A stretch of 64,000 bases of DNA. Source: Bugula neritina (lineage: Eukaryota > Animalia > Bryozoa). The notes beneath the pieces were generated by a model. That model was given only the letters and a program-made list of their open reading frames with translations. It searched no databases and had not been told where the DNA came from. The DNA lies in assembly GCA_964035545.1 (NCBI GenBank), contig OZ037766.1, positions 19,456,767-19,520,766 of the forward strand, in the 5' to 3' direction. Shown piece after piece: positions 1,835 through 64,000 of this stretch. The position numbers were made by a program, and so were the translations under genes. Numbering within the stretch: position 1 is the first letter of the stretch; every line of letters begins with the position of its first letter.

Positions 1835-3507
1835 ATTATAGCTGGAAAAATCTTGGCAAGGATACTATCTAAGAGACTTTTTTATGTTGCAGAAGATATT
1901 CTTCCAGAGTCACAATGCCGATTCCATACCGGGAGGGGTACAGTAGACACGTTTTTGTCTCAAGGCAAATATAGGAAAAATGCAGTGAACGACACTAAAA
2001 TTTCTATATGGCCTTCATTGACCATACCAAGGCATTTAATACCGTTAAGAAATCGCTATGAAGTATAATCGGGAAGATTGGCTGTCCTTCAAAATTCGTA
2101 ACCATAGTTCATCTTCTGCATGATGAAATGACGGCCTCGGTTCTAGTTGATAGTCAGATATCTGAATCCTTCAAGGTGCAAACTGGTGTCAAACAAGACC
2201 GTGTAATTGCGCCAACACTGTTCTCCAGATACTTATTCGCTGTGCTCTACCTTGTGAAGCTTGAATTACCATTAGGCATAGGATTGAACTACCGTATTGG
2301 TGACTTGTTCAATTTACAAAGACTCCGAGTGAAGATATTAACATCAACAACTTCTGACAACAATGTTCTTGTGACTGACTCAGAGGAACAACTCCAGATT
2401 GCTATGACTGCTTTTGAGAAGGCTTATAATGCTTTTGGATTGAAGCTAAATGCTAAAAAGACCCAGGTTTTATGTCAACCAAAACCAAGAAAGCACTTAG
2501 ACCTACATTACTAAAAAACTCACGCAAGTTTATAGTCACTATCCCTGTGACAAACCCCTGATAGAAAGGGTTTTTATTAAAGCGGGCTAAAGACTTATTT
2601 AAATGAGGCACAGGAGCAATTATGACTGGATGCTCTTCCTAACATCACCAATGGCCTTTGCCAGGGCTCGAATCCATGACTTTCGTGTTTACTAGGCAAA
2701 CGCTCTAACCCCTAGACCACAGCTGCTCCCCTACATTGTATTACTGCTGGTGGCAAAATACTATGTGTGGTTGATGCATCTGTAGCCACCTATCTTCAAA
2801 GGCAGATTTAGGAAGAGAGATCGACAGATGGTTTCAGGCTGCCAGCATTGGTCTCAGCAAATTGAGGTGAGTATTTGACAACAACGATCTATAAATGACT
2901 ACAAAACTAAAGGTTTATAAAGTGATCAGTATTCCAACACTACTCTATGCCTCAGAAGCTTGGACCACCTACAGTATGGATATTAAAAATCTGGAAGATT
3001 ATCTTATGAGGAGTTACAAGGTCCCTCGAAAATCAAATGGACCAATAAGTGCAAAAACTTTGATGGGCCGGAGATTTGGTCAGAATAAACAACAAACATA
3101 TACCGAAGCAAACCCTCTACAGTCTACAGAAAGATGCAAAATTGAAAGAGATCCCAAGGTCGACAGATGAAGCGCTTCAAGGATTGTCTCAAAGACAGCT
3201 TGAAGCACCGCCATATCAGAACTAAACCTGGAAATGGAATGCTACCAGAAGGACCAGCTGGCGATCTATGCTACATAGTACATAGTGATAGTGGTGTGCA
3301 GATTTTTGAAGACGAGAGACACAGAGAAAAACTAAGAGCAAGAAGAAAGGCTAGGCTCAACTCAACAGACACTCAGGTGAATGATGACCTCTCATGCCAA
3401 CAGTGTGAGTGTGACCACATATGCAGGTCACGGATTGGATTCTGGAGCCATCTAATAACTTGCAAGCAGACATCGTACTCTATCTAGAGGGTTTGCTAAG
3501 ACTAAAG
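1835..3507 (+). mobile_element. 5'-truncated, decayed RTE-clade LINE (reverse transcriptase and C-terminal Zn-knuckle region)
   Basis: Frameshifted ORF pieces: GKILARIL..ILPESQCRF..GRGTVD, TGVKQDRVIAPTLFS, GLKLNAKKTQV, TKLKVYKVISIPTLLYASEAWT, KRFKDCLKDSLK, CQQCECDHICRSRIGFWSH; all typical of RTE-clade ORFs. Interrupted by a SINE at 2513-2730. Confidence 0.9.
2513..2730 (-). mobile_element. tRNA-derived SINE inserted in the RTE LINE
   Basis: Reverse complement of the copy at 44022-44225; flanked by near-duplicated cctacatt. Confidence 0.85.
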
Positions 3508-4005
3508 AATACCAATATATTAACTTTAACTTTAAGATAATTTATGAATAGTATTAGTATAACTTTAAGTATTACTGACTTATAATTATACAATAATACA
3601 GTTAGTGCTATTACAATTTTACTACTACTAGTAGTAGTACTACTACTAATACTATTACTATTAGTATTACTACTACTAGTAGTAGTAGTAGTAGTAGTAC
3701 TACTACTATACATTTTGATTTACTACTAAATACTAAATAGTAAATAGCTATACTTATACTTATAGTTAAAGTTATAGTAGTAAATTAAAACGTATTGCTA
3801 TTAGTATTACTGTATTAGTAATAGTATAAATACAATACTAATAGTAATAGTAATAATATCAGTATAAGTATCACTATGACTATTTAATATTAATATTATT
3901 AATATTATATTTATTATTTATTAATAAATAATTATATTTATATTAATATATTATTATAATTAATAATATAAATATGACTATGAGTATCAGTATCAGTATG
4001 AGTAT
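3508..4005. repeat. Degenerate AT-rich triplet tract including (CTA)n/(GTA)n microsatellite
   Basis: actactacta/gtagtagta runs at 3620-3710. Confidence 0.75.
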
Positions 4006-4288
4006 GGCACATGTGACATTGGCAGCTAATAAATAATAATAGGCTCTGCATTCTAGTGTTTATACTGTTGCCGACCTAAATGTTAATCACTTGTTACACT
4101 TAATGTGAGGTGAAAAATAAACGTGGTGGTAAGTTGTAACTTGGTCAATCCACGCCTCAAACTAATGCTTCGTTCAGTGGGTTTACCTCAATCCTTAAAT
4201 CATCACCTGCTGCAAACTATGTAGTTCCGCAATTAAGAAAAGATAACTCCGTAAACAAGTTAACACTTTTCCGTCTTCATATTATTTT

Positions 4289-4327
4289 CATTGAACTATA
4301 ACCTATAGTTATAGTTTCAGTTCAGTG
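4289..4327. mobile_element. Ultra-short hAT-like MITE (same family as 20619-20653)
   Basis: cattgaactata...tatagtttcagttcagtg with degenerate 8-bp flanks attatttt/aatattct. Confidence 0.6.
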
Positions 4328-4774
4328 AATATTCTATTCACTACTGGTTTATAATTTAGTATGTTCTACTTCTTTTTTCGAATTCAAAGCAAAAATCGCA
4401 TTGGTGAAAATTATAAAAGCTTCATGTGACTAAATGTAAAAGGCTGATAAAATAAGCAATCATTATTGCAATACTCATTTCAATTTGGCGTGGGATATGA
4501 ATGAAATTTTAGGACCCCGACCATTGAAACAACTATAATACATGTACACTTTTGACCCCGTCAATGATGGCCACATCGCTTCAGTTTGTCTTCATTACAT
4601 ATTGGCGCGTTTTTGCGTAGAGGTATGTGGTTTAGCAGTTTATTGAATTTATATCTTAAAACAACAATATTGATATTTTTCTCATTAAAATATTGCTATA
4701 AATTTTACTAAATTTTTTCAAGATATTTTTATAAAAACTAACTGCTAATAGCAATGTCAGCTCCGTGAGTCAAC

Positions 4775-4787
4775 GTTACTTAGCAAC
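4775..4787 (+). promoter_or_regulatory. Candidate RFX X-box in the putative promoter of the IF/lamin-tail gene
   Basis: GTTACTTAGCAAC is a near match to GTNRCC-N(0-3)-RGYAAC; lies in a CpG-richer island (about 4010-4990) with nearby splice-donor-like sites. Confidence 0.45.
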
Positions 4788-5189
4788 CAAATGGGAACAT
4801 ATTCCTATTACAGACGGTGACTAGTTGGTAAAATATTTTTATTTCAGTAAAATTAAGCTGGTTCGTGCTATCTTTTGCATAAATCTAACATGTTTCTAGT
4901 TTATTTATATAGTATAAAATTGCTAAGCATAGCAGTACCTCAACTTGTAAATGACTATGCTATAGTGATTACAAAGATAAACTCGTAATGAATATTATTA
5001 TTATAATTATGATAATGATTATTTTATTGGTGTTAATATTAATAATATTTATATTATACGCAGAGTTAATAAAATTAAATACATATAATTATAATGGTGA
5101 CCGTAATGATCATCACAATCACAATTATTACTGATAACTAAGAACTGCTAAGAGTATCAATAAGTAGTAACTGTAAGTACTATGAGTAT

Positions 5190-7533
5190 TGTAGTTTCGT
5201 GAATTACGACTACTTGCAGGTATTATTGTATGTGATTGATTACTGCATCATTAGCGAGGTTATAACAGAACCGAACGTGTTGATTAAATGCGATATAATT
5301 ATATTAGTTACAAAAGATACAAAGCAAAATAGGTTACATCAGTTGATAAAATAACAAGAGTTACAGCATTGCATTAGTTACTATCCAGTTCCTAGCAGTT
5401 CCTGACGTGGACTCGTAAGTGCCGCAGGTGGGGCAGCTGGAGTTGAAGATCCAGCTCTGGTTCTTCCTCCATCCTCAATAATGGAACCTTTTTCTGCCAT
5501 AGGGGTTCTCACTTCCGGACCTGGGTCAGGTTCCAGAAGTGACGGTATTGGGGCTGGAGCAGGAGGCGGCGGACTCACCTCCGGCGGGAGAGGTGGTTGC
5601 TCGTCGTCTCTTACTAGGTCCCTGTCTCGCTGCACTACCACCTCATACTCAGGTCCGTGCCGTAGCCGCCCTCGCGTTGCCGTCTGCCTCCTGGGCTTGA
5701 GCAACGGGGGTGCTTCTCCTACCGCATCGGGGCTAGCCCTATACGGTTTTAAGCGAGCCTCATTCTGGATTTACACCTGTCCTGAACGCTCAACCTTGTA
5801 CGTATGATTGGGCATAGCCTCGACTACCAAGTAGGGTCCTACAAACTTGGGCTGTAGTTTAGCCGCTTGTCCGCGACGCCTGCGGTAGTTGGCTATTCAG
5901 ACCCAGTCCCCCACCTGATAGAGGGGAGGCTCATCGGAGTCTTCAGTCTACACCTGCCATTGCTTCTCGCGAAGCATATCATGTGCAGCCCTCATACGTT
6001 CTACCAACTCCCCCACATACTCATGTACAGGATTATCGTGTAGGAAACATAGTAGGTTCGATGGTCGGGGACCCGGGTCTCTCGACCGAGCATCAAGAGG
6101 TTGGGAGTTTTACCAGTACTGGTGTGTGGGGTGCTGCGCAAAGTCTGGTATGCACTGCCGATAGTACCCTACTAGGCCCAAGAATGCTCGGAGTCCAGTC
6201 AAATCCTGGGGGGTGACCTGGTCTTCCACTGCCCGTACCTTCTCAGGATCCGTCGCCACGCCGTTTCGGCTGACGACGTGCCTCAGGTACTTAGCCTCCG
6301 GCTGTAATAAAGAGCATTTGGAGGGTTTCAGTTTCAGACCGGCATCTCTGAGTCGTTCAAAAACCTTCTTTAGACGGCTGACATGAGTCGCGAAGTCTCG
6401 GGAGATTACGATGACGGCATTGAGGTTAATGAGCAGTGTCTTCCAGTGTTCCATAAGTCTTTGAAGAGTGGTCGGGGCAAAGGTCAACCCGAACGGCAGC
6501 ACCTTCCACTTCCAGAGCCTGTCCTGCATTATAAACGCAGCCTTATCTTGAGCATCAGGGCTAAGGGGAACCTGCCAGTGCTCGCTAAGCAAGTCTAATG
6601 TACTGAAGTACTTGCTACCGGCCAGGGCGTCCAGAGACTCATCAATGCGAAAAAGAAGGTAGGCGTCCTGTATGGTCACGCTATTGAGCTTGCAGTAATC
6701 TACACAGAACTGCCAACTTCCGTCTTTTTTTCGGACCAGTATGACCAGCGAGCTCTACGCACTGTGTGCTGGCTCTATGAGGCTGCGGTCCAGAAGATCC
6801 TCTTTGAGTTGGCTGACAATAAACGTCTCCCAAATAGCCTGATCCCGGACACATCCTGTCAACTCAACTATACCATAGAAAGGGACACACGACCCATCCG
6901 CCAACGCACGGTGTTCCCCATTGCATGAAACCAGTTCAGCCTTATCTTTAGCGCTGAGGGTGTCAAAGAGCTGGCGGCTTAGGAGGTTCGTGGTACACCC
7001 TGAATCCAACAGGAAGGTGACAGTTTTACCGGCTACCTTGCCTGGTAAGAAGTAGCAGTTCCCGTGAGGTTGTACGTGCACTCCCCTAGTGCGCTCTGTC
7101 TTTGCAGGAGACACCTCATTCGCTTTGAGTTTCGGCTGAAGTAGCCTGCGGCGTTTGTGAACAGGTCTTCGAAGGGGAGGAAGCATTCCACCAGACGCTA
7201 GGTCATTAGCGAGGTTATAACAGAACCGAACTTGTTGATTAGATGCGATATATTTATATTAGTTACAAAAGATACAAAGCAAAATAGGTTACATCAGTTG
7301 ATAAAATAACAAGAGTTGCAACTTTACATTAGTTACTATCCAGTTAATAGCATGGTCCTCTGTCTGCTGTAGGTGCCGGCAGGCGCTGTTTATAAATGCT
7401 AGGTCAACCCTCATTGGTTGATCTCCCCACATGTTATGGTCAGTGTTAATTGGCGGGTAGATCCACAGTGTTATTCATCAACTCACGTTGCCTGCCGCAT
7501 GTGAAGTGGGAAGACTGGGATAGAAACGTTATA
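5190..7533 (-). mobile_element. Internally deleted Ty3/Gypsy LTR retrotransposon (protease-RT-partial integrase)
   Basis: Protease FLLDSGCTTNL (6755-7186); RT YFSTLDLLS..WQV..LPFGL..APTT..GLKLKPSKC..LRAFLGLVGYYR (6110-6750); integrase C-terminus KLQPKFVGPY (about 5830-5860); 143-bp direct repeats at 5248-5390 and 7203-7345; gag and RNase H missing. Confidence 0.92.
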
Positions 7534-36165: not shown

Positions 36166-36768
36166 ATGTCGGACACTCCAGCAGCTGCTTCACCAGTCAA
36201 ATCCAAGCCAGCAAAGAAGGCTCCAGCAAAGCCGAAGACTCCAGCTGCACACCCTCCAGTAGCCGACATGGTAACGGCAGCTATTAAAGCCTTGAAAGAC
36301 CGCAAAGGCTCTTCTTTACCTGCCATCAAGAAGTACCTGAGTGCCAACTACAAAGTAGATGTTTCAAAACTGGCGCCTTTCATCAAAAAGTTTTTGAGAA
36401 GCGCCGTTGCTAGTGGTAAATTGGTGCAAGTTAAAGGCACTGGCGCAAGTGGCTCTTTCAAACTCAGTGCAGCAGCCAAAGCTGAAAAACCCAAGAAGCC
36501 AGCTGCCAAGAAGAGCCCAGCTAAAGCCAAAAAGCCAGCTGCCAAGAAGAGCCCAGCTAAAGCCAAGAAACCAGCAGCCAAGAAAAGCCCAGCTAAAGCC
36601 AAAAAACCAGCAGCTAAGAAGAGCCCAGCTAAAGCCAAGAAGCCAGCAGCCAAGAAGCCTGCTGCAAAGAAGCCAGCAGCCAAGAAGCCTGCTGCCAAGA
36701 AACCAGCAGCCAAGAAGCCTGCTGCCAAGAAACCAGCAGCCAAAAAGCCTGCTTCCAAAAAAGCATAA
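36166..36768 (+). CDS. H1: Histone H1 (intronless, replication-dependent type)
   Basis: [45 protein letters not shown] globular domain; Lys/Ala/Pro-rich tail. Confidence 0.98.
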
Positions 36769-37069: not shown

Positions 37070-47543
<10,474 letters not shown>

Positions 47544-50869: not shown

Positions 50870-51900
50870 GTGTAATTATTTATTATATATTCTCGGTGCA
50901 TATGACGAATTGTTCGTGTCAGAAAACTAGTGTGGAAGTTGGAACATGTTTTTCCTAGCTGATATTGAGATGAGCTCTCCTCTGGCAGCCGCCCGGGTGG
51001 TTACAGTTACAAGCTTCCTGTCTTCAATAATCCTATCATAGGTTCTAGATAGAGTTTGGTGCTGATCATCATTCTGAAGAGTTCGGGCCGGTAAACACAG
51101 TCAATGTTTTTTTCTTCTGGCTTTCAGCAACCGCAGTCCTAACTTATTCCCTGCCTCAGATACACTGTTAGTGCATACTTCAGATTGCTTATGAACCGTA
51201 TGGCACTGTTCTGGACCAGCTCTATATCATGCACCTTGCTTTTGGTTGCAGGATTTCAAACCACATTTGCATAATCAAGTGTAGGCCTGCATAGACTTGT
51301 ATAAGCCAGTAGCTTAGCTTTCTTTGGGGCATCTTAAATTAAGGAGTTGATTACTCCAAGGACTTTCCGGAACTTGTTACACTTCTCATTTATGATTAAA
51401 TAATAGGTGTGACTGGTTTGTTATCCCAAGGTATTCGGTGTTTTCAGCCTATGCAAGTAATGTGGTACCGACTTTGTAATGTGATATAGGGGTTACTTTA
51501 CCAAAATTAATTGCCTGGCATTTTTTTCACCGAAGGGCATTTTTTATTCTATAGACCATTCATAGACAGTTGGTGATGCAGCACGTTGTGTTCCATCATT
51601 TTACCGGGAATGCTTGTCAAGAATATGAGCCTGAAATTGTTTGGAGATTTGCTGTCACCGCCCTTATGTATTGGTGTGACATTTGCAAGTTTCCACTGTC
51701 TTGGCAGTCTATAGGTGTCTAACGGCCTTTTGTAGATCAGTGCCAGATGTCTTGCAGTACCATTCAAGTCTATGAGCGTGCCAGGCTTTCGAACTCTATC
51801 AGGTCTAGTGGACTTCATTTGGAAAATTTTGAAATAGTTTGGCAAGCCTTTCCGGTGTAACATCAATGAAATCCTGGGCATCACTTTAGATACCCGAGAA
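50870..51900 (-). mobile_element. Decayed, internally deleted CR1-group LINE RT fragment
   Basis: LPRQWKLANVTPIHKGGDSKSPNNFRLIFLTSIPGKMMEH; downstream LLAYTSLCRPTLDYANVV and ELVQNSAIRFI motifs. Confidence 0.85.
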
Positions 51901-54337: not shown

Positions 54338-57300
54338 ATGAGAATGGAGATGAGCAACACTGCATCCAATACGGCTTTAGTGAAAATAGTGAACTTACAG
54401 ACCACAGGTTAGATTTTTGTCCCAAAACTGTTCGACTTGTCCATTCCTTCAATCACATATATATTGGTATTATTAAATACAACTAACTTATGTTTATAGT
54501 CTCCATCTCTGCGATAAACCTTGATGGTAATTTTTAAGCAGGCTATTGACTTGTTTCTATTGTGGCAAAGTAGCAACTATGACTGAATTACCTTTCTAGC
54601 ATCATCAATGGCCTTCACTAGGATTCGAACCACTGACCTTGTGTTTGCTAAGCTCATAGACCACTGCTGCTCCATTATCATATTGTTGAATGCAACTGTG
54701 GTTCTTTTTATTATTAATTAAAATGTTTTTGCAGTACTAGGAGATTGGCCTAAACCTACAAATTTGCCAGTTCCAGACACCCACAAGGCAACACTAGAGG
54801 GCAGAATTTATATTCCAGCTGAGTTTAATACTTTTTTGAAGAAGTTAAGAAAAGAATCATCAAGTGAGTTAAAAAATAGTTATAAAGGCGCCCCAATTAC
54901 ATTAATACTGAGCAACATAAGGACTTGTACATTATTCACTACTTACTAATAATGTAAATCACTTACCTTATAGTGTTTCTTGTGTTGTATAGTATTATTT
55001 GCATCTAGCATACAGGCGATGAAAATTCTGATTGTCATTTATTCAAAGAGCTTGCAAAATACATTTTGCCATTTAACAGATTTTAATCCAGACTCCAATG
55101 TTTTACTTAACAATAATATATTTATTAAATGAATCTCATATCTGTATATATGTCAGCACACAGGAGCCTTTCAAAGTACTCATCTATGCTACAACTTTTT
55201 CTCAAATATGAAAATGTAGACATATAAAGGCAGTTTTATACCGTTTAGAGTAATTTTAAGTGTACAATAGCTTTAATTCATATATCTACTTTACTTTTAG
55301 TAGCAAGAGCCTGTTAGTTATAGCATTTCCTACTATTTTAGTTGAGCATGATTTGAAGAATAGCCCGGAGTCTGCTAGACTTTCTATTGAAACATATCGA
55401 CATGAGTTACCAGCTGACTTCTTCAATGTGTGCATACTACCCACAGATCATGCTAATAATTTTCATGGTAAGCATCACTAACAGCTGCTTGTCAAAGAAA
55501 ATCATATTTGTCACAAAGTTTGCAGAATGTGATCTTGTGTTGTGTGGTTTCTTCCAGAGAATGTTCACATTCATTCTAAGGTGTTAAAAGACAGGAGACT
55601 GATGAAGCGAAGTAGACCAGCAGTAAAAGCCAGTTCAGGCGAAAAGTTAAACACTCACAACTCACTCCTACCACATTGGGCTTCTTCGTCTTCATTGTAT
55701 GTAGACACAAAGTTTATCATAATTGATAATGAACAATAATGTAGTTGTTGGTATAAATTTTAAACACAAATTGATGTAAATTAAGAAGTATTATGCATGG
55801 TTTTTATGAGCGTGTGCATTCACGGTAAATCTATATTTAACTTTTTAGGCATCGGAGTATAGTTTTCAATTGATAATCTTATCCCCATTTTCAGTTTTTA
55901 GAGTGCAGTGTAATTTTTATTTTAGAAAGCTATCAGTGTCATCTGATTCTTCTCAAGGTGCTCGTGGAGCAAGGTCTAGAAATATGCTAGCCAATCACCG
56001 CAATCACCATGTTATCCCACCTTTTCTGATGCATATCAATGATAAAACCCAGTGCTGGTACCGCGACCATCAATCTGGTACTGCTGATACTCCTTTACAA
56101 TTGTTTACGCAGTATTCTTCATGTGCATCTGCGTCTTTAATCTCACCTGAGGTATAGTTTGTAGTTCAACTGGTAAATTACATATACTGATAGGATTAGG
56201 GCCACTGTCAGTATTATATAATTTTATGTCACAGTATTGGGTGTTAGTTAAAACCAGTGCTATTGATCTGCAGCCGCTCAACTTGGCATTCTCAAAGTCA
56301 TGCTGACTGCAATAAGTGAAACTTGATATATCTAATTCAATTCTTCTGTGTGATAATTTAATTTCATAGTTGAACTAGATACTTATTCTAACAAAAAGTG
56401 TATGAACTATTAAGTATTAAACACTAACATTGTTCGTAATATTATTATTCCATCAATTAGCTGTGGTCAACTTGAGATTTAGACATGAAGAACTATCATG
56501 TGCTCACATAACAAACCTCTATACTGTGTTATATACTCTTAATATTTCAATGCTCTGTTTTTAGTCCAAAAGATTTTCTAAGCAAGAAGTGACTACCCAA
56601 TCAGTTCATGCTGACTATCAGTTTGTAAGTAGTCACTGATTCATGCTGACTAACAGTTTGTAAATAGTCACTGATTTTGTCTTTTTTACAGACATAATTT
56701 TCTAACATAGTACTTTATTTCAAATTTTAACCCTAAATTTTTATTATTTTTTTAATAAAAAACCAGTTAAAGTCAGCTAAAATTATACATTTTAGCGCCT
56801 AGCATACTACTCGTATTTACTCATTTTCAGTTTGTATGTTCCATGTATGTCATCACTTATTGATTATGTTTTTGTCAGGGTTTCGTAGGAAAATCACAGT
56901 CACTATTTTCTCACCAACGATCTGAGACTGGTTTCAAAAGATGGTTGTCATTGCTTTTGCATGCTAGAAGAAAGCAACAACCACTGCATCTTATAGAATC
57001 TGATACAGCTAGGTAAGTTGCTATGCTTTTTCTATATAAAAACTTCATAATTTGTGGTTAAAAGATGTTTTATCATTTAAATATTATATACTAAAATTGT
57101 ATTATTTGTCCTGCTTAGTATGTTGCTTGCATGTATATGAAACAAAATTTTTATAACTACTCGCACACTTTTCAAGATTACATGATCACATTGTAAATAC
57201 TTTATTCAGCAATAATGACTGTGTTTTGTCATAGTTCTATAATAACTACTTTCATCATAATTGCTCTTTATTTATACTGTTGAAAAGTGTTAACATCTAT

Positions 57301-60300
57301 TGCTGTGTAGTAGAGTTTATCAAAATTAGGCTTTACAAGTTTCTTGCAGCATTACCTTTACAAAGTTGAGTGTAATGTACATTTAATGAGATACAATTCA
57401 TTGTTTTATAAAATGTACATGCAAAATCAGTGCTAACATCATCTGCTAAGATTAGTGGATCTGATTTTAGCCCTGAAGTTTCATCAGAGAAGCCATTATC
57501 TGTAGCATCTTTACCTTCGGATCCACTCATACCTAAAATGCTCAGTGCCCCTGCCTCTCTTCCACGCATGAAAGGTCCTCTTCCACGAGTCAAAAGTCCC
57601 ACTGAACTTTCTCTCCGAGCGTCTGTTTTGCCACAAGGTACACTAATTATGGTTAGGATTTTCATTTTCATTATAGTTATTTTGTACATTGAGTTGACAA
57701 TGAGTTTTCACTTTTGCATCTTATTTTTATATAATACTGTATGTTTCAATTTTACGCACATTTGTGGTGAAATCAGCAGTATTTTGGAGTTGCCTTTTCT
57801 TTTTTTGCTCTGTCTTTGGACAAGCGACTACTAATTATAGTTGTTTTCTCAACACAATTTATTATTAAACTTTTGTTTTTGATGCCAGGTTTCACGAAGT
57901 GCTTCAACGCTGCTTTGTATAACTGCATTAATGAGCAAATAAATTGTGGCGTCTCTGTAGCAACTGATGGATCTGTTTTAAAAGAGAATTCTGTATATCA
58001 CTTTTGGTGAGTTAGTCTAAAGAAAAAAAGAAATATTTTTTTGGTATCTCTGTTTGATGATTTTGTTGTTGAAAAACTAGTAAGCTTTAGTCTTTTAAAA
58101 CTTATATTAATTAATAAATTGTTATGTCTATGCTATATTGACCATATCTTATGTATTTTAACCCAGTCGGCATATCAAAGGGATAGACTTCAGCAATTTA
58201 AGCTATCGTATTTGCCACGCAGGAGCTATTCAATCTTATGTTCCAATAATTACTGGCAAGTTAGAAGTTGAACTTCCAGGTTTTATGGCTGAAGAGTGGT
58301 TCAAGGCACAAAACTTATCCTCTGTACCTATCAAATCGTGCATACCTGGCCCTTTCACTATCATACAGATGCTTTCTATATGTGGGTATTTTATTAATTG
58401 GTACTGTTTTAAATATCTTAAATAACATTTTCTAGCAGTACATAAATTTAGCGTTGTAAATTTAATAGTGACTGATATAAAAATGTAAAATGATGAATAT
58501 ATTGTGTCTTTTCAGTTGGTTACTGAGGCTTATTTAACCTAATAGCTTTGCAATGAAAGTGTTATACTTTGATGTACCATTAGTAGTTTTTTTGTCTCAA
58601 AGCTATACTATATCATCTATTAACTATGTGATGTAATTTTGCTGTTTTTTTTTAATTTTTTTGGTTGCTAACCTACTGAATAAAAAGTAAAGTCTTGATG
58701 TGACTATTTGTACATAGATTACAAGTGCTAACATTTTAGTATTCATGTCACAGGTGGAAAGGCCTACCCTTATGGTAGCTCTGCTACTTTGTTATCTGAT
58801 CTAATAGCCATCATATCAAAAGAGGTGCTCTTGCTGTATAGCAAAGGTTGTCGACATGTTCAAGTAGATGAGCCATATTTAGCTGACATTGGAGAAAGTG
58901 TAGGTGCTTCTGAGTTCATTGGCAAAATGAAGAAGATGGCTGCATGTTTTGAAGTAAGTTATTCTATTTATATGGCATGAAAATGCACGATACGAATTGT
59001 ACTCATCTTTAAATGCCAACGTAGCTAAACTAACACAGCAAGAGTTTGAACAATTGGCTTGAAATTTACCAGGGAAAAGCAGCTAAGGGAATGCTTTTTT
59101 TCTGGCAACTAATATTGCCCATCAAATATGTCACTTTAATTACATGATGGTATTATGTGACAGGGTGGCATTTCTTTATTGGAGTTTCTGTACAGTTAGA
59201 TTTAATGATTTCTCGGAAGTACCTCATTAAATTAAAAAGGTTACTTATACAATTTATACAATTACATGAAACATTTAAAATGTGTATTAAAACAGCAATA
59301 CATTTTTAGCTCTAATCCTCTAGTCATCCTTCAGAATGAAAAAAGACTAGAGATGATGACTCAATGTTTGCTTCTTATAAACATTCACTTACACCAACGA
59401 CTCATTAATGAAGATATGGCATAACCATCCAAATACACGACATTATTTTTTCTTTTAGAAAGTCAGCTCATTGCCTTTATTTAGCAACAAAACACTTGGT
59501 TGACTTAAATTGGACGAACAATGCTTTGCTCAACTTTAGCAGCATAAGAGTTGACTGTGTAGGCTGCTTAAATACAGTAGGAGTTGTTTACTCTCTGAAC
59601 ATGGCGCTGAAAAGAACTAAGAAAAGCCGTAATACTCTTGAAATGCCACCTACAAATATTTAAAAGAATTAGCTTATGTTGAATTGACTGATCACTTGGT
59701 TCAGATTGATAGCTTAGTAGTGAGTTGTTAACAGATGAAATGTTTATGCTATTTTATATGTCGTTCATTTTCTCATTAAATTTTTTCTCAACTTGTCAGT
59801 AGTGCTTAGCTGGTATACTCTAATTTATATGGTAATGTTTATTACTAGAAAGTTCCATGGAACTCATCAGCTAGACCAGAATCAGGTGAAAAGACAAAGC
59901 CTCCTGTGATGAAAGTCTATCTCCATGCATGCAGCAGACTCAATATAGTGAGTTGAAGCTGATTGTCTGAGTAAAGTCTAATCTACAGTCTCCAGCAATC
60001 ATCCGCAGCAAACATATAAAATGACTGAGTTATGTCTGCCTCTTCTCTACTACTAGTCCTACATACGTGTTGCATGTGACATTATGATGTTGTAGTATGG
60101 AAGCGAATCCCGAGTACAACAGAGCAGCCCTTCACTCAGTCTACTTCTTGAAACTGCTGATAAACTGGGCTTCTATGCTGGTGAGTTATTGCGCTGGCTA
60201 TGACTGGTGCACTATACTTGGTAATTGTGTTATAGTATGAATACTAATTATATGTTATGATATATGCTTGATTCTTGTGAAACATACTTTAATATATTAT

Positions 60301-62932
60301 TATTGTATTTAAAGTGTATAATTTACTATAGTATACTATATGTATACTCACAGTGTGTGTAGAATATATTGTAACTTACTATAGTGTATATACTTGGGGT
60401 GTGTAGAATATATTATAACTTACTAAAGTATATGTATTTACAGTGTGTAGAATATATTATAACTTATTATAGTATATGTATTTACAGTGTGTAGAATATA
60501 TTATAACTTACTCTAGTATATGTACTTACAGTGCGTGTAGAATATATTATAACTTACTCTAGTATATGTACTTACAGTGTGTGTAGAATATATTATAACT
60601 TACTCTAGTATATGTACTTACAGTGTGTGTAGAATATATTATAACTTATTATAGTATATATACTTACAGTGTATGTAGATTATATTACAAGTTACTCTAG
60701 TATATGTACTTACAGTGTGTGTAGAAGACATAGGTAACCTTGACCTCAAGCAGTTGCTACACACTAAGAAAACTAAGATAGTCCTGGGATGCAGCGACTC
60801 GTTTGATAAGACTGTGGAAGCTGTATCTGATATACGTAGACGTCTTCTGGAAGTACTGCTCTATATACCAGCTAGCCGTCTCATCACTAGTGTCACCTGT
60901 GGACTCAGCTCTCTCTCTCAGAGTAAGCTGCTCAGACATACACTGTTGTTCCTGTGCTGCAAGATATAGAGTACAGAATACTGAACTGAGAACAACATAA
61001 CTATTCATTGTTGAAATTTTGGTTTTAAATAACTTTGATAACAGTTTGAAACTATTGCCTTTTAGTTTTCCTTTCATGCATATCAACATAAACAATGAAG
61101 TATTTATAAACTGCACCCACAGGTCTGGCATCCAGAAAGCTACTTAATGTATGCGTTGCCTCCCAACAGCTTGTAGTTCCCTCCCATACTTATTATAATG
61201 CAGACAATGCTCATCGAAAGACAACGTAAGTTTAATATAAACAATTAGTATGCTTTTATTATGGTATTGATACGCTACTAGAAAAAGCTATAATATTACA
61301 TTATTTGGTTGAGGTTGAATTTTGATTTCAAATATGTGTCGGTATTACATTATGACATAAACTGTAACAATCGACCAGCAAAAGGGCTATGCAAGAAAAT
61401 GGTTGAGTTTTATTGATCGAAACTGAGCCTTAGTATGCAACTGTAGCTTGGAACTGTATGTTCTTGGCTGTTTCTGTAGCTCGTCTAAGAGGTTTCAGAA
61501 ATCTCCAAGACCAAAGCCGGCATTCAAGTCTGCAAAGAAACACCAACCTGTGTACTCTGTTAAGAAGAAGGACAGCAGACAAAAAGTAAATCTATTGAGC
61601 ATAAGGTCTAGTCACTAGCAGTCAGCGACAAACAGCCACAAAGTTTGTTGTTTTTAAGAGATTTTAAAGTTTCAAAACACAACTTTTTGAAGCCAACCAC
61701 TCTGTTGCAGAAGCTTGCAGCTGCTGTTGATCTGCTTGCATCCAGAAGTCAAGATGATAGGCTAAACATAGATTCACTGGAAAGCCAAAGTTCTTCTATT
61801 GCTGAGATAGATTCCACAAGGTGTGTTGGTGCTGCTGATAAGACAAGTGACAGCACTGTCAGTATAGCTAGTAACATAACCACTTCGCCTGGTGGCATCA
61901 GCAGGTCACATGATGATGTAGAAGTTGCTGACCAATCAGTGGAGAGTGGTGGTCAGCCTAGTAGTCCTGCTATGAGTGTTAGTATGGGGGACACCAAGAA
62001 TAGTAAGCCTCACTATGAGAGAGAAGATGAAGTGGAAGATGCTGCAGGTACAACTACTTGTATATATATAACTTTAGCTTCAACATGAATAAGTAGGAGC
62101 TTCGTATTAGGGCTTTAAAAGTGGTCAGTGGTTCAAATCTCAGTAAAGGCCATTGGCGATGTTATGATGGGCATTCAGCCATAATTGCTCCTTGCAATAG
62201 AAAACAAGTCATTAGTCTGCTTAAAAGACCTTCACCACCAGGGGACCTAACAGGGATAGAGACTATCAACATACTAGAGTAGAGCAGAATATTACATCTA
62301 AACCAAAAGAAAGCGAATTGTAATGACGAAAAATCCTATAGTTTTGTTTTTCCGCTATTATCAAGGCTTTTGTTCTATATTAATAATTTAAATTATAAAA
62401 ATAAATTTATTAAACTTACTGATACATTTGAAAAAAAGGCTAAAATTATCGAATTCGTTAACTATGATTCTAGTAGTTTTAGTTATTGCTAAAGACAATG
62501 AATAACGACTTAGTAAAATTTTCACGATAACTGTCATGGGTTAGTGAATAACTCAAAGTAGTTTTTTAATATATCGTTATTCATCTGATTAAACTTTTAT
62601 TCTTTGTTCTATTTTACTATTTAAAATGCAGTTGTTATATATGTTACCTTAAATTAACTTAGCATTTGTATGTGCTATGAAGTAATATTGTTTTAATGTC
62701 TTTAAAGTTGTCCTCTTTTTTTAACTGTGTTCTAATCATTTTGCCTATATTATTACCTACCTCATAATGCGAATTTTATCTTTAATTAGACCATGGTTAA
62801 AGTTGCTACACTGTTCATAACTCTATTGACGTGTGTATCTGAACTATAGGTGAATCAACTCTTGTCAATCTACAACAGCCGTCAGTTACCTGTGGTAGTA
62901 TTAATACAAGTACATCAGCTACTTGTTCATAA
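54338..62932 (+). CDS. Cobalamin-independent methionine synthase catalytic-domain (MetE C-terminal/core type) protein with large internal insertion and C-terminal extension
   Basis: Exons approx 54338-54407 + 54735-54863 (LQTTVLGDWPKPTNLPVPD); insert exons 55342-55467, about 55558-55640, 55926-56151, 56565-56624, 56879-57011, 57471-57637; then 57889-58006 (EQINCGVSVATDGSVLKENSVYHF), 58167-58381 (CRHIKGIDF..EEWFKAQ..PIKSCIPGPFTI), 58754-58953 (GCRHVQVDEP), 59849-59947 (YLHACS), 60096-60180, 60716-60921 (VCVED..IVLG..VEAVSDIRRRL..IPASRLITSVTCGL), 61124-61224 (ASRKLLNV), 61480-61585, 61711-62047, 62850-62932. The start may extend upstream. Confidence 0.8.
54495..54672 (-). mobile_element. tRNA-derived SINE, diverged subfamily
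   Basis: Shares head and core (ctatgactgaa..catcaatggcc..ttcgaacc..agaccactgctgctcc). Confidence 0.75.
60320..60725. repeat. About 46-bp minisatellite overlapping an intron 3' splice site, about 8-9 copies
   Basis: Unit cagtgtgtgtagaatatattataacttactctagtatatgtactta; the last copy runs into the exon VCVED. Confidence 0.9.
62096..62270 (+). mobile_element. tRNA-derived SINE, diverged subfamily
   Basis: ggttcaaatctc B-box-like; ggccattggcgatgttatgatgggcattcagccataattgctcc core; cagggatagagactat 3' part. Confidence 0.75.
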
Positions 62933-64000
62933 TGTTGCAGTGTGAATAAAGAAGTAGCCTATGTTGTTCTATTTTCGTTTTCATCTTATGTCCTCCAGAT
63001 GTTAAGAAAAGATTTTGGCAGTCTGTTGGCGTGTTTGGAGAAAAGGGTGCTCTGCAGCAAATGATTATCAGTATGACTGAGCAACTGTTATCTACAACAA
63101 GAAGGACAATGTTTATCTATAGAAAGAAATACTCCAACTGCTCACTTCGTAAAGGACTAAAGAAATGGAAGTATGTCCAAGTCTTGCCACTTCTATATGA
63201 GAGTTGTGTACCAAATAAATAGTAAACCATGTGTGATGTAACACATGCATGCAGTTTGTCATGAAAATTTTGCTATAGGAGTTTTCTTCTTCTATAATGT
63301 ATAAACAACTCATCCATTGCTCATAACATTAGGGGTGGCTCAAAATCTTGTGCTGGAATCCTGACATCACCTGTTTAACTTCTGGTTTTAAAAACAAAAC
63401 ATTAGCTTCCTTGATTGTGAAAATAACTCTGAGAGGGAAAATTCCAAATCACAGAAGTGGTGCCATTCGCCAGTTCAACTCACCATATTGTATGATGTAT
63501 CCATACTTTATTATTGTTAGCGTTTTTCAACACTGTCATCTCAACAACTTAATTAACTCAAGATTTTTACAATTCTATTTGCATTATAAAGCATCGTGTT
63601 GTGAACTACCAACAGGAATGTGGGAATCTATATGAAGAAGTTGTTAACTGAAGCACAGCACGACCTGTCCATAGGGCCTTCTCTACTATTTAAACATTAC
63701 GATGCTGTGAATATTTCAACTGAATTCATTGGTGAGTTTATGATAGATAACCTAACAGAAACATACTTCGAGTTTATTAATCATTTATATTTAACAACTG
63801 TACCAATACAAATCAGTAATTTAGTTCAGTAATATTTTTAGTGTTATTTATTTGGTTGTATAGAGATGTAGAAATGTCACTAAAGGGCACCTGCAATAAT
63901 CTATCAATAAATGGAATGGAATTGACAATTTCCTTTAAAAAGCAAAGTTAACAAGTTCAAAGCATGGGATATGTTTTCCTCTTTTAGGTATACCTGAATT

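Follow-up and report, generated by a model that had tools for sequence, protein, structure and literature searches.

In the textbook view, animals depend on the B12-dependent enzyme MetH, which raises the question of what an intron-rich gene with a barrel of the type seen in MetE (cobalamin-independent methionine synthase) does in the genome of the bryozoan Bugula neritina. The gene lies in a 64-kb stretch of AT-rich DNA (about 33% G+C; contig OZ037766.1 of assembly GCA_964035545.1, positions 19,456,767 to 19,520,766 of the forward strand), which is the whole stretch that we analyzed and is referred to as the window in the following; unless a genome coordinate is given, positions are those of the window. 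The barrel gene is encoded on the + strand, where its motifs, between 54338 and 61229, stand in open frames with GT-AG sites on either side. It is near certain that this is a real, spliced and conserved protein-coding gene, in which a barrel is combined with an insertion and an extension. We further estimate a probability of about 0.5 that its product is a neofunctionalized zinc-thiolate module with altered substrate recognition, fused to a C-terminal domain.

A first-pass annotation, made from the DNA letters, had read the sequence as an animal gene rich in introns that encodes a barrel of the MetE C-terminal type, and collinear profile matches to five exons together with spliced RNA bear this description out. 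A family hidden Markov model (HMM), which we built from 28 canonical single-barrel homologs and applied to every one of the window's 2,847 open segments (six frames), matches only five segments at E<1, all of them on the + strand and collinear, with a summed score of 183 bits and a best single-exon E-value of 2e-18; there is no further match among these 2,847 segments, and the agreement far exceeds what chance would produce. The profile searches were made exon by exon, with the following matches: E2 (model positions 6-53, 12.0 bits), E3 (48-84, 23.7 bits), E4 (85-155, 64.4 bits), E5 (160-216, 34.4 bits) and E7 (263-337, 48.7 bits). Likewise, the NCBIfam single-domain methionine synthase models PRK09121 and PRK04326 match E4, E5 and E7 collinearly. 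The family HMM matches five exons, whereas the Pfam model PF01717 (Meth_synt_2) yields only 12.4 and 14.6 bits per exon, below its 21-bit cut-off. Judged by these profiles, the gene is to be placed in the Meth_synt_2 / URO-D_CIMS-like superfamily of single-barrel MetE-like proteins. The motifs on which the annotation had relied are all found where it had located them, on the + strand and in open exon frames: TT^VLGDWPKP (a caret marks splice boundaries throughout) spans E1 and E2, ..VATDGS..EN..YHF^CRHIKGIDF spans E3 and E4, PIKSCIPGPFTI lies in E4, GCRHVQVDEP in E5, HAC at exactly 59924-59932 in E6, VCVED and VTCGL in E7, and ASRKLLNV in E8.

Within the window, the model comprises 18 in-frame exons, E1 to E12 including the insertion exons i1 to i5 and an additional barrel exon E6b, with canonical splice sites and consistent phases throughout. 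Transcript evidence comes from a public RNA-seq run labelled 'symbiont metagenome', whose contigs are ~95% identical to the window and drop to a depth of zero in the introns, whereas exons and introns alike are covered by a DNA run of 'organism A'. The RNA contigs confirm 11 GT-AG joints, namely 57637^57889, 58006^58167, 58381^58754, 58953^59849, 59947^60096, 60180^60716, 60922^61123, 61225^61480, 61585^61711, 62047^62999 and 63170^63616, the last of them from a loose end. This comparison covered a 6-kb stretch, outside of which lie E1, E2 and i1 to i3, and we therefore infer these exons from their splice sites, phases and matches to the family model or to orthologs. E1 (54338-54407) runs from the start codon to ..NLQTT and ends in a phase-1 donor (G^GTTAGA); in species C (contig L017), the intron has the same position and phase (..NIQTT^GTAAGT). 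E2 (54735-54863) continues with (V)LGDWPKP.., encodes barrel strand 1 and the start of helix 1, and has an L017 ortholog at E=4e-10. E3 (57889-58006; ..VSVATDGSVLKENSVYHF), E4 (58167-58381; CRHIKGIDF..PGPFTI.., with orthologous exons at 57-72% identity), E5 (58754-58953; ..KGCRHVQVDEP..) and E6 (59849-59947; ..VYLHACSRLNI) are joined by RNA on both sides. They are followed by E7 (60716-60922; (V)CVEDIG.....SVTCGLSSLSQ), which is contained in an RNA contig, and by E8 (61123-61225; (S)LASRKLLNV..), which encodes the last barrel helix and ends in the donor AC^GTAAGT with an RNA joint from 61222/5 to 61480.

For the barrel, the exon set of the first-pass annotation was incomplete, as it omitted the exon E6b (60096-60180; ..LLLETADKLGFYA), which is bounded by RNA joints and has an ortholog in L017. 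Without E6b, E6 ends in phase 0 and E7 starts in phase 1, and the His-x-Cys pair lies only about 10 residues from the zinc-ligand Glu; with it, this spacing is 40 residues, compared to 40-41 in the canonical paralog. E6b thus restores both the phase and the spacing and therefore belongs to the barrel model. With this exon in place, the barrel exons E3 to E8 are joined in one open frame by spliced contigs of a ~95%-identical relative, in agreement with the single open frame that the annotation had assumed.

The intron before E7 contains a 46-bp minisatellite (8.7 copies, 60332-60726, + strand). Each copy repeats the E7 acceptor and the first bases of the exon (..ACTTACAG^TGTGTGTAGAA..), resulting in about eight decoy acceptors; the acceptor used in the RNA is that of the last copy.

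The barrel is not the stand-alone 'core' synthase that had been proposed, given that it carries an insertion and that the RNA frame continues through E9 to E12. It is near certain that a 264-residue insertion, largely rich in Ser, Pro and Lys, splits the TIM barrel after strand 1 and helix 1: the joints i4^i5 and i5^E3 are seen in the RNA, and i1 to i3 are placed by their sequence. Together, i1 to i5 amount to 792 nt and are in frame between E2 and E3, with canonical splice sites and fitting phases. For i1 (55342-55467), an AG acceptor and the donor G^GTAAGC are in phase with E2 and i2, and there is a weak collinear match to L017 (E=0.027); i2 (55558-55696) has a CAG^ acceptor and the donor TT^GTATGT, again in phase. 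The next exon, i3 (55926-56151), encodes a weakly conserved ..PPF..YRDH.. motif and is supported by its splice sites and phase, along with weak collinear matches to L017 and L014 (E 0.15-0.9). i4 (56879-57012) lies between a CAG^ acceptor and the donor AG^GTAAGT, and the Ser/Pro-rich i5 (57471-57637) is joined to E3 by a GT..AG joint from 57635/7 to 57887/9 at a depth of 225. The relevant RNA contig has a length of 1,360 nt, of which 663 letters lie upstream of the i5 part; the last 30 of these, a loose end, match the 3' end of i4, and the five insertion exons together account for the length of the contig. A direct E2^E3 joint would also be in frame; the RNA contig joins E3 to i5 instead, although an isoform that skips the insertion may exist as well. 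Comparison of intron 2 with the orthologous contigs by tblastx gave no match at E<1e-3, and a laxer tblastn search of the insertion region gave only weak collinear matches, so that conservation of the insertion between taxa is weakly supported by these alignments.

At the other end of the barrel, an in-frame TAA codon (61227-61229) is overlapped by the E8 donor and is removed by splicing. Species B shares this arrangement of a phase-2 donor over a stop codon, there AT^GTGAGT over a TGA. With the stop lost in this way, the coding sequence of the barrel continues into a C-terminal extension of >260 residues: the frame runs through the Lys-rich linker exon E9 (61480-61585, RNA contig and splice sites), the Ser/Asp-rich low-complexity linker exon E10 (61711-62047, 112 residues, with a GT..AG joint to 62999), E11 (62999-63170, RNA contig) and E12 (63616-63800), and then past the end of the window. 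E12 was located by an RNA loose end behind 63176, which matches 63616 onward in frame, with 63800 as a provisional 3' limit. The end point 62932, which the first-pass annotation had given for the gene, is therefore not an exon end. A charged, Ser-rich linker of ~150 residues separates the barrel from a conserved C-terminal domain, whose first exon is E11 (..RFWQS..ERLL.ATRRT..); E11-type exons are conserved and syntenic downstream in L014, L015 and L017 (E 5e-8 to 1e-11), and a further conserved piece of the gene lies beyond the window at G000:C2:19521410-19521487. Neither the C-terminal and insertion exons nor their orthologous exons matched any Pfam family, and the ESM Atlas gave no usable lead. 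The C-terminal domain is thus conserved without belonging to a recognizable family, and it may supply a partner or targeting function.

Two repeats are found in this part of the locus. Where a short interspersed repeat (62123-62195) lies in the intron between E10 and E11, the depth of the DNA contig jumps about 30-fold (2,900 versus about 105), and numerous loose ends flank it in the RNA and DNA runs alike. Directly after the likely end of the gene, 0.9-4.8 kb past the end of the window, a 24-bp minisatellite extends over about 4 kb (G000:C2:19521650-19525570, contig L022) and reads ..LILPTLLS.. in one frame.

Which parts of the active site have been kept can be judged from the residues that bind zinc and homocysteine in MetE, for which we follow the roles and Escherichia coli numbering of Price et al. 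(2021; PMC7857596). The predicted zinc ligands of the window gene are His (59924-59926) and Cys (59930-59932) in E6 and Glu (60724-60726) and Cys (60898-60900) in E7. In the alignments, His641-x-Cys643 corresponds to HAC in the window, HMC in species B and HLC in species C; Glu665 to VED in the window and in species B and to IDD in species C; and Cys726 to VTCG, PSCG and PTCG, respectively. The retention of all four ligand positions, as postulated in the first-pass annotation, is thereby upheld, and no ortholog in which these positions are readable has lost His-x-Cys, Glu (or Asp) or Cys. An Asp in place of Glu665 is compatible with activity in MesB (PMC7857596). Furthermore, when E7 is aligned to residues 275-331 of the MesD structure 3RPD, its Cys falls on the Cys of the TNCG motif.

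By contrast, two of the three homocysteine-contact residues are lost. Asp599, which binds the homocysteine amino group, is kept as DEP in the window (Asp 58867-58869, E5) and in species B and as DET in species C. Glu484, which binds the same group, is replaced by Ser in the window (57972-57974, E3), by Phe in species B and D and by Trp in species C, and Ser433, which binds the carboxyl group, is replaced by Asp in the window (54743-54745, E2) and by Ala in species C. The change from TDGE to TDGS, which had been read as a sign of a changed substrate, is therefore present, with Ser at the Glu484 site, and altered substrate recognition is plausible. The second change cited to this end, from PDCG to VTCG, is present as well, but it is not diagnostic of a changed substrate, given that the MesD structure carries TNCG. 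On the alignments, the replacements of Glu484 (S/F/W/F) and Ser433 (D/A) are the more telling ones.

The gene is not confined to this species. We searched a library of 1.8 billion representatives with E4 and found exon-sized orthologous fragments at 72, 63, 63 and 57% identity, as well as canonical proteins of ~350 residues at 35-48%; no full-length annotated protein of the divergent gene was found among these representatives. Contigs with three of the four fragments (L014-L021, L027) contain the orthologous gene with its exon order kept. Orthologs are thus found in at least four further taxa, with introns that share no sequence similarity. Of 186 differences that separate the RNA contigs from the window, the 40 best-supported include 25 synonymous and 10 non-synonymous ones, with a ratio of 20:6 in the barrel exons, and this synonymous excess indicates that the gene is under purifying selection. 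In two contigs of species C (L020, L021), E4 and E5 are followed by open reading frames (ORFs) with an NRF domain (PF20146) instead of E6. L017 and L019 keep the normal order, and the arrangement in L020 and L021 may stem from structural variation, a truncated duplicate or an assembly error.

The genome itself (216 Mb) also contains canonical relatives, as a search suggested by the first-pass annotation revealed: two single-barrel MetE-like genes are located in tandem on the minus strand at G000:C2:29706158-29721188 (L012, L013). They carry the motifs TDGE, HICC, SIEGA and PDCG, and copy A scores 345 bits on the family HMM. For copy B, a stretch of about 3 kb upstream did not yield the first exon, and a ~2-kb AT-rich minisatellite lies in one of its introns (L013, about 3200-5400). 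In addition, B12-dependent MetH is encoded at G000:C3:2857537-2861544, where its activation domain is found in five exons with up to 106 bits. The folate-binding barrel Meth_synt_1 (PF08267) was matched in eight control genomes but nowhere in the whole of this one. When the canonical paralogs are compared to the divergent gene, their intron positions hardly coincide.

It had further been suggested that the gene may be of bacterial origin. A recent transfer is not supported by our results, as the exons group with animal homologs and the family is annotated across marine invertebrates. A word-index search with the Tubulanus protein retrieved canonical homologs of ~350 residues across animals, interleaved with marine protists and alphaproteobacteria at 46-54% identity; the animals include corals, a hydrozoan, sea urchins, starfish, a brittle star, hemichordates, amphioxus, a brachiopod, nemerteans and an annelid. 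The best matches of E3 and E7 are animal proteins at 43-52% identity, and in four per-exon trees the window gene and its orthologs form one long branch among animal sequences. These trees allow only coarse use, as the alignments are short (37-71 columns), carry no support values and leave out most paralog exons, which were too fragmented for inclusion. Taken together, best matches, trees and family distribution point to an old, fast-evolving extra paralog within an animal family rather than to a recent bacterial acquisition.

Among known systems, the closest is the animal and alphaproteobacterial 'cobalamin-independent methionine synthase II family' (e.g. XP_074652062.1 from Tubulanus, ~350 residues; also annotated as '5-methyltetrahydropteroyltriglutamate-homocysteine methyltransferase-like'), which has the same barrel with a collinear match over HMM positions 6-337 and shares with the window gene the zinc-ligand positions and the absence of the Meth_synt_1 half. 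The window gene differs from it in an HMM score of about half (183 versus 345 bits), in the loss of the Glu484 and Ser433 equivalents, in the insertion after helix 1, in a spliced-out stop codon with the C-terminal extension behind it, and in almost all of its intron positions; together with its orthologs, it further differs in the change of PDCG to V/P-T/S-CG. Our literature search returned nothing relevant on animal core MetE and no experimentally shown function of the animal proteins. The solved structure that comes nearest to the canonical family (E=1e-34) is that of MesD from Shewanella (3RPD; PMC7857596), likewise a single barrel. MesD proper has two defining features, an identity of about 55% or more to ACIAD3523 and a partner, MesX (DUF1852) (PMC7857596). 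On PRK09121, which has a cut-off of 392, canonical animal proteins score 168-208 bits and the window exons 20-24 bits; MesX (PF08908) was not found in the genome, a search that is uninformative in that the control genomes were equally without a match.

Other single-barrel enzymes are the MesB or core-MetE proteins of anaerobes with the Wood-Ljungdahl pathway, which obtain methyl groups from corrinoid proteins (PMC7005905, PMC7857596). MesB shows no conservation of Glu484, with a Trp close to the site, and Asp can replace Glu665, as it does in the species C ortholog. In the MetE fusions of haptophytes and other marine protists, the core barrel is likewise part of a larger eukaryotic multidomain protein, but with PP-binding/PKS domains upstream and CzcO/Pyr_redox_2 domains downstream (PMC10861871), whereas the flanking exons in the window match no Pfam family. 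Finally, canonical two-barrel MetE (E. coli, Thermotoga maritima, plants, fungi) shares the catalytic C-terminal barrel with its zinc site of His-x-Cys, Glu and Cys, but also has the N-terminal Meth_synt_1 barrel. Because no such barrel was found in the genome, direct use of methyltetrahydrofolate-triglutamate appears unlikely.

If the gene product is a neofunctionalized zinc-thiolate module, as we propose, its barrel would bind Zn2+ by His-x-Cys, by Glu, which is Asp in one species, and by Cys. The zinc would lower the pKa of a bound thiol, as in MetE, and the resulting thiolate would accept an alkyl group, presumably methyl. This thiol, or its binding mode, would probably differ from that in canonical homocysteine methylation, with the amino-acid end being recognized differently. 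Given that the canonical paralogs and MetH would cover methionine synthesis, the divergent copy may have been free to take on a new role, in which its C-terminal domain could provide the partner or targeting function considered above. Several points weigh against this proposal. Characterized MesB methionine synthases also lack Glu484 and have a Trp near the site (PMC7857596), and as these enzymes are active, the loss of Glu484 does not exclude homocysteine as a substrate. Some canonical relatives, among them the genome's own paralogs, already have Val or Ala in place of Ser433, and the variability of the Glu484 site among orthologs could mean relaxed constraint in a non-catalytic domain. At the level of the gene model, the RNA stems from a near relative rather than from the sequenced individual, and E1, E2 and i1 to i3 lie outside the stretch that was compared with it.

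These points lead to two other explanations of an intact gene. One, which we regard as rather unlikely, is a pseudoenzyme with a structural zinc site and without alkyl transfer, whose barrel would serve as a binding or scaffold module in a partly disordered protein that functions through its C-terminal domain. The loss of two of the three homocysteine contacts, the variable Glu484 site, the change of DEP to DET in species C, the halved HMM score and the long disordered insertions and linkers are all in line with it, but the four zinc-ligand positions are kept in all readable orthologs despite 40-60% sequence divergence, as are the active-site motifs PGPxT, (K/R)EN..YHF, DE(P/T) and VE(A/S)V, and pseudoenzymes usually lose such residues. 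The opposite view, that the protein is a B12-sparing homocysteine methyltransferase isoform with MesB-like homocysteine binding that receives its methyl group via the C-terminal domain or a partner, seems less likely still to us. It would explain the conservation of the zinc tetrad and of Asp599, it has precedents in active MesB enzymes without Glu484, with a nearby Trp and with Asp usable for Glu665 (PMC7857596), and the protist fusions show that core barrels can function as parts of larger proteins (PMC10861871). However, the genome already contains two canonical single-barrel copies and MetH, the Asp that the window gene has in place of Ser433 would be turned towards the carboxylate of the substrate, and the gene forms a long branch in every exon tree. 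That the gene is a pseudogene in decay, that it results from misassembly or contamination, or that it was recently transferred from bacteria is highly improbable and already contradicted: divergent motifs and weak Pfam scores per exon (12-15 bits versus the 21-bit cut-off) might suggest one of these, but splicing, consistent phases over 18 exons, orthologs in other taxa with common intron positions and the synonymous excess exclude a pseudogene or artefact, and E3 and E7 are closest to animal proteins, in a window that also holds an animal-type histone H1 gene and retroelements.

With the proposed zinc-thiolate module, a more specific scenario can be outlined, which we put forward tentatively and consider somewhat unlikely as a whole. 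An ancient single-barrel enzyme would have been duplicated in bryozoans and rebuilt as a multidomain protein, in which the zinc-thiolate site alkylates a thiol other than free homocysteine, or binds it tightly; this thiol could be, for example, a cysteine in a protein or peptide or a small sulfur metabolite. The C-terminal domain would deliver the substrate or the methyl donor. If true, this would be the first substrate switch in an animal MetE barrel, comparable to the archaeal coenzyme M methyltransferases of the same superfamily. Single-barrel MetE-like genes are annotated across marine invertebrate phyla, and here one of them has been duplicated and remodelled with its metal site kept. Activity on a new thiol would extend the zinc-thiolate alkyl-transfer chemistry of animals and provide a handle on the sulfur and methyl metabolism of bryozoans, which are known for unusual chemistry. 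Even if inactive, the gene cleanly illustrates how a stop codon is bypassed by an overlapping splice donor, how a large disordered insertion is tolerated in a TIM barrel and how intron positions turn over almost completely between paralogs. For experimental work, the canonical animal family is probably a more important target than the divergent copy.

The remainder of the window contains few other features. An intronless histone H1 gene with a long repeat tail is located at 36166-36768, where it is overlapped by a spurious antisense ORF, and ORF fragments of retrotransposon reverse transcriptases and proteases are found at 2128-2514, 6110-7186 (minus strand) and 51549-51884 (minus strand), as one would expect in animal DNA. 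At 45469-45980, a trinucleotide microsatellite (about 500 bp) gives rise to poly-Val, poly-Ser/Gly and poly-Thr ORFs and coincides with a strong local spike in GC skew.

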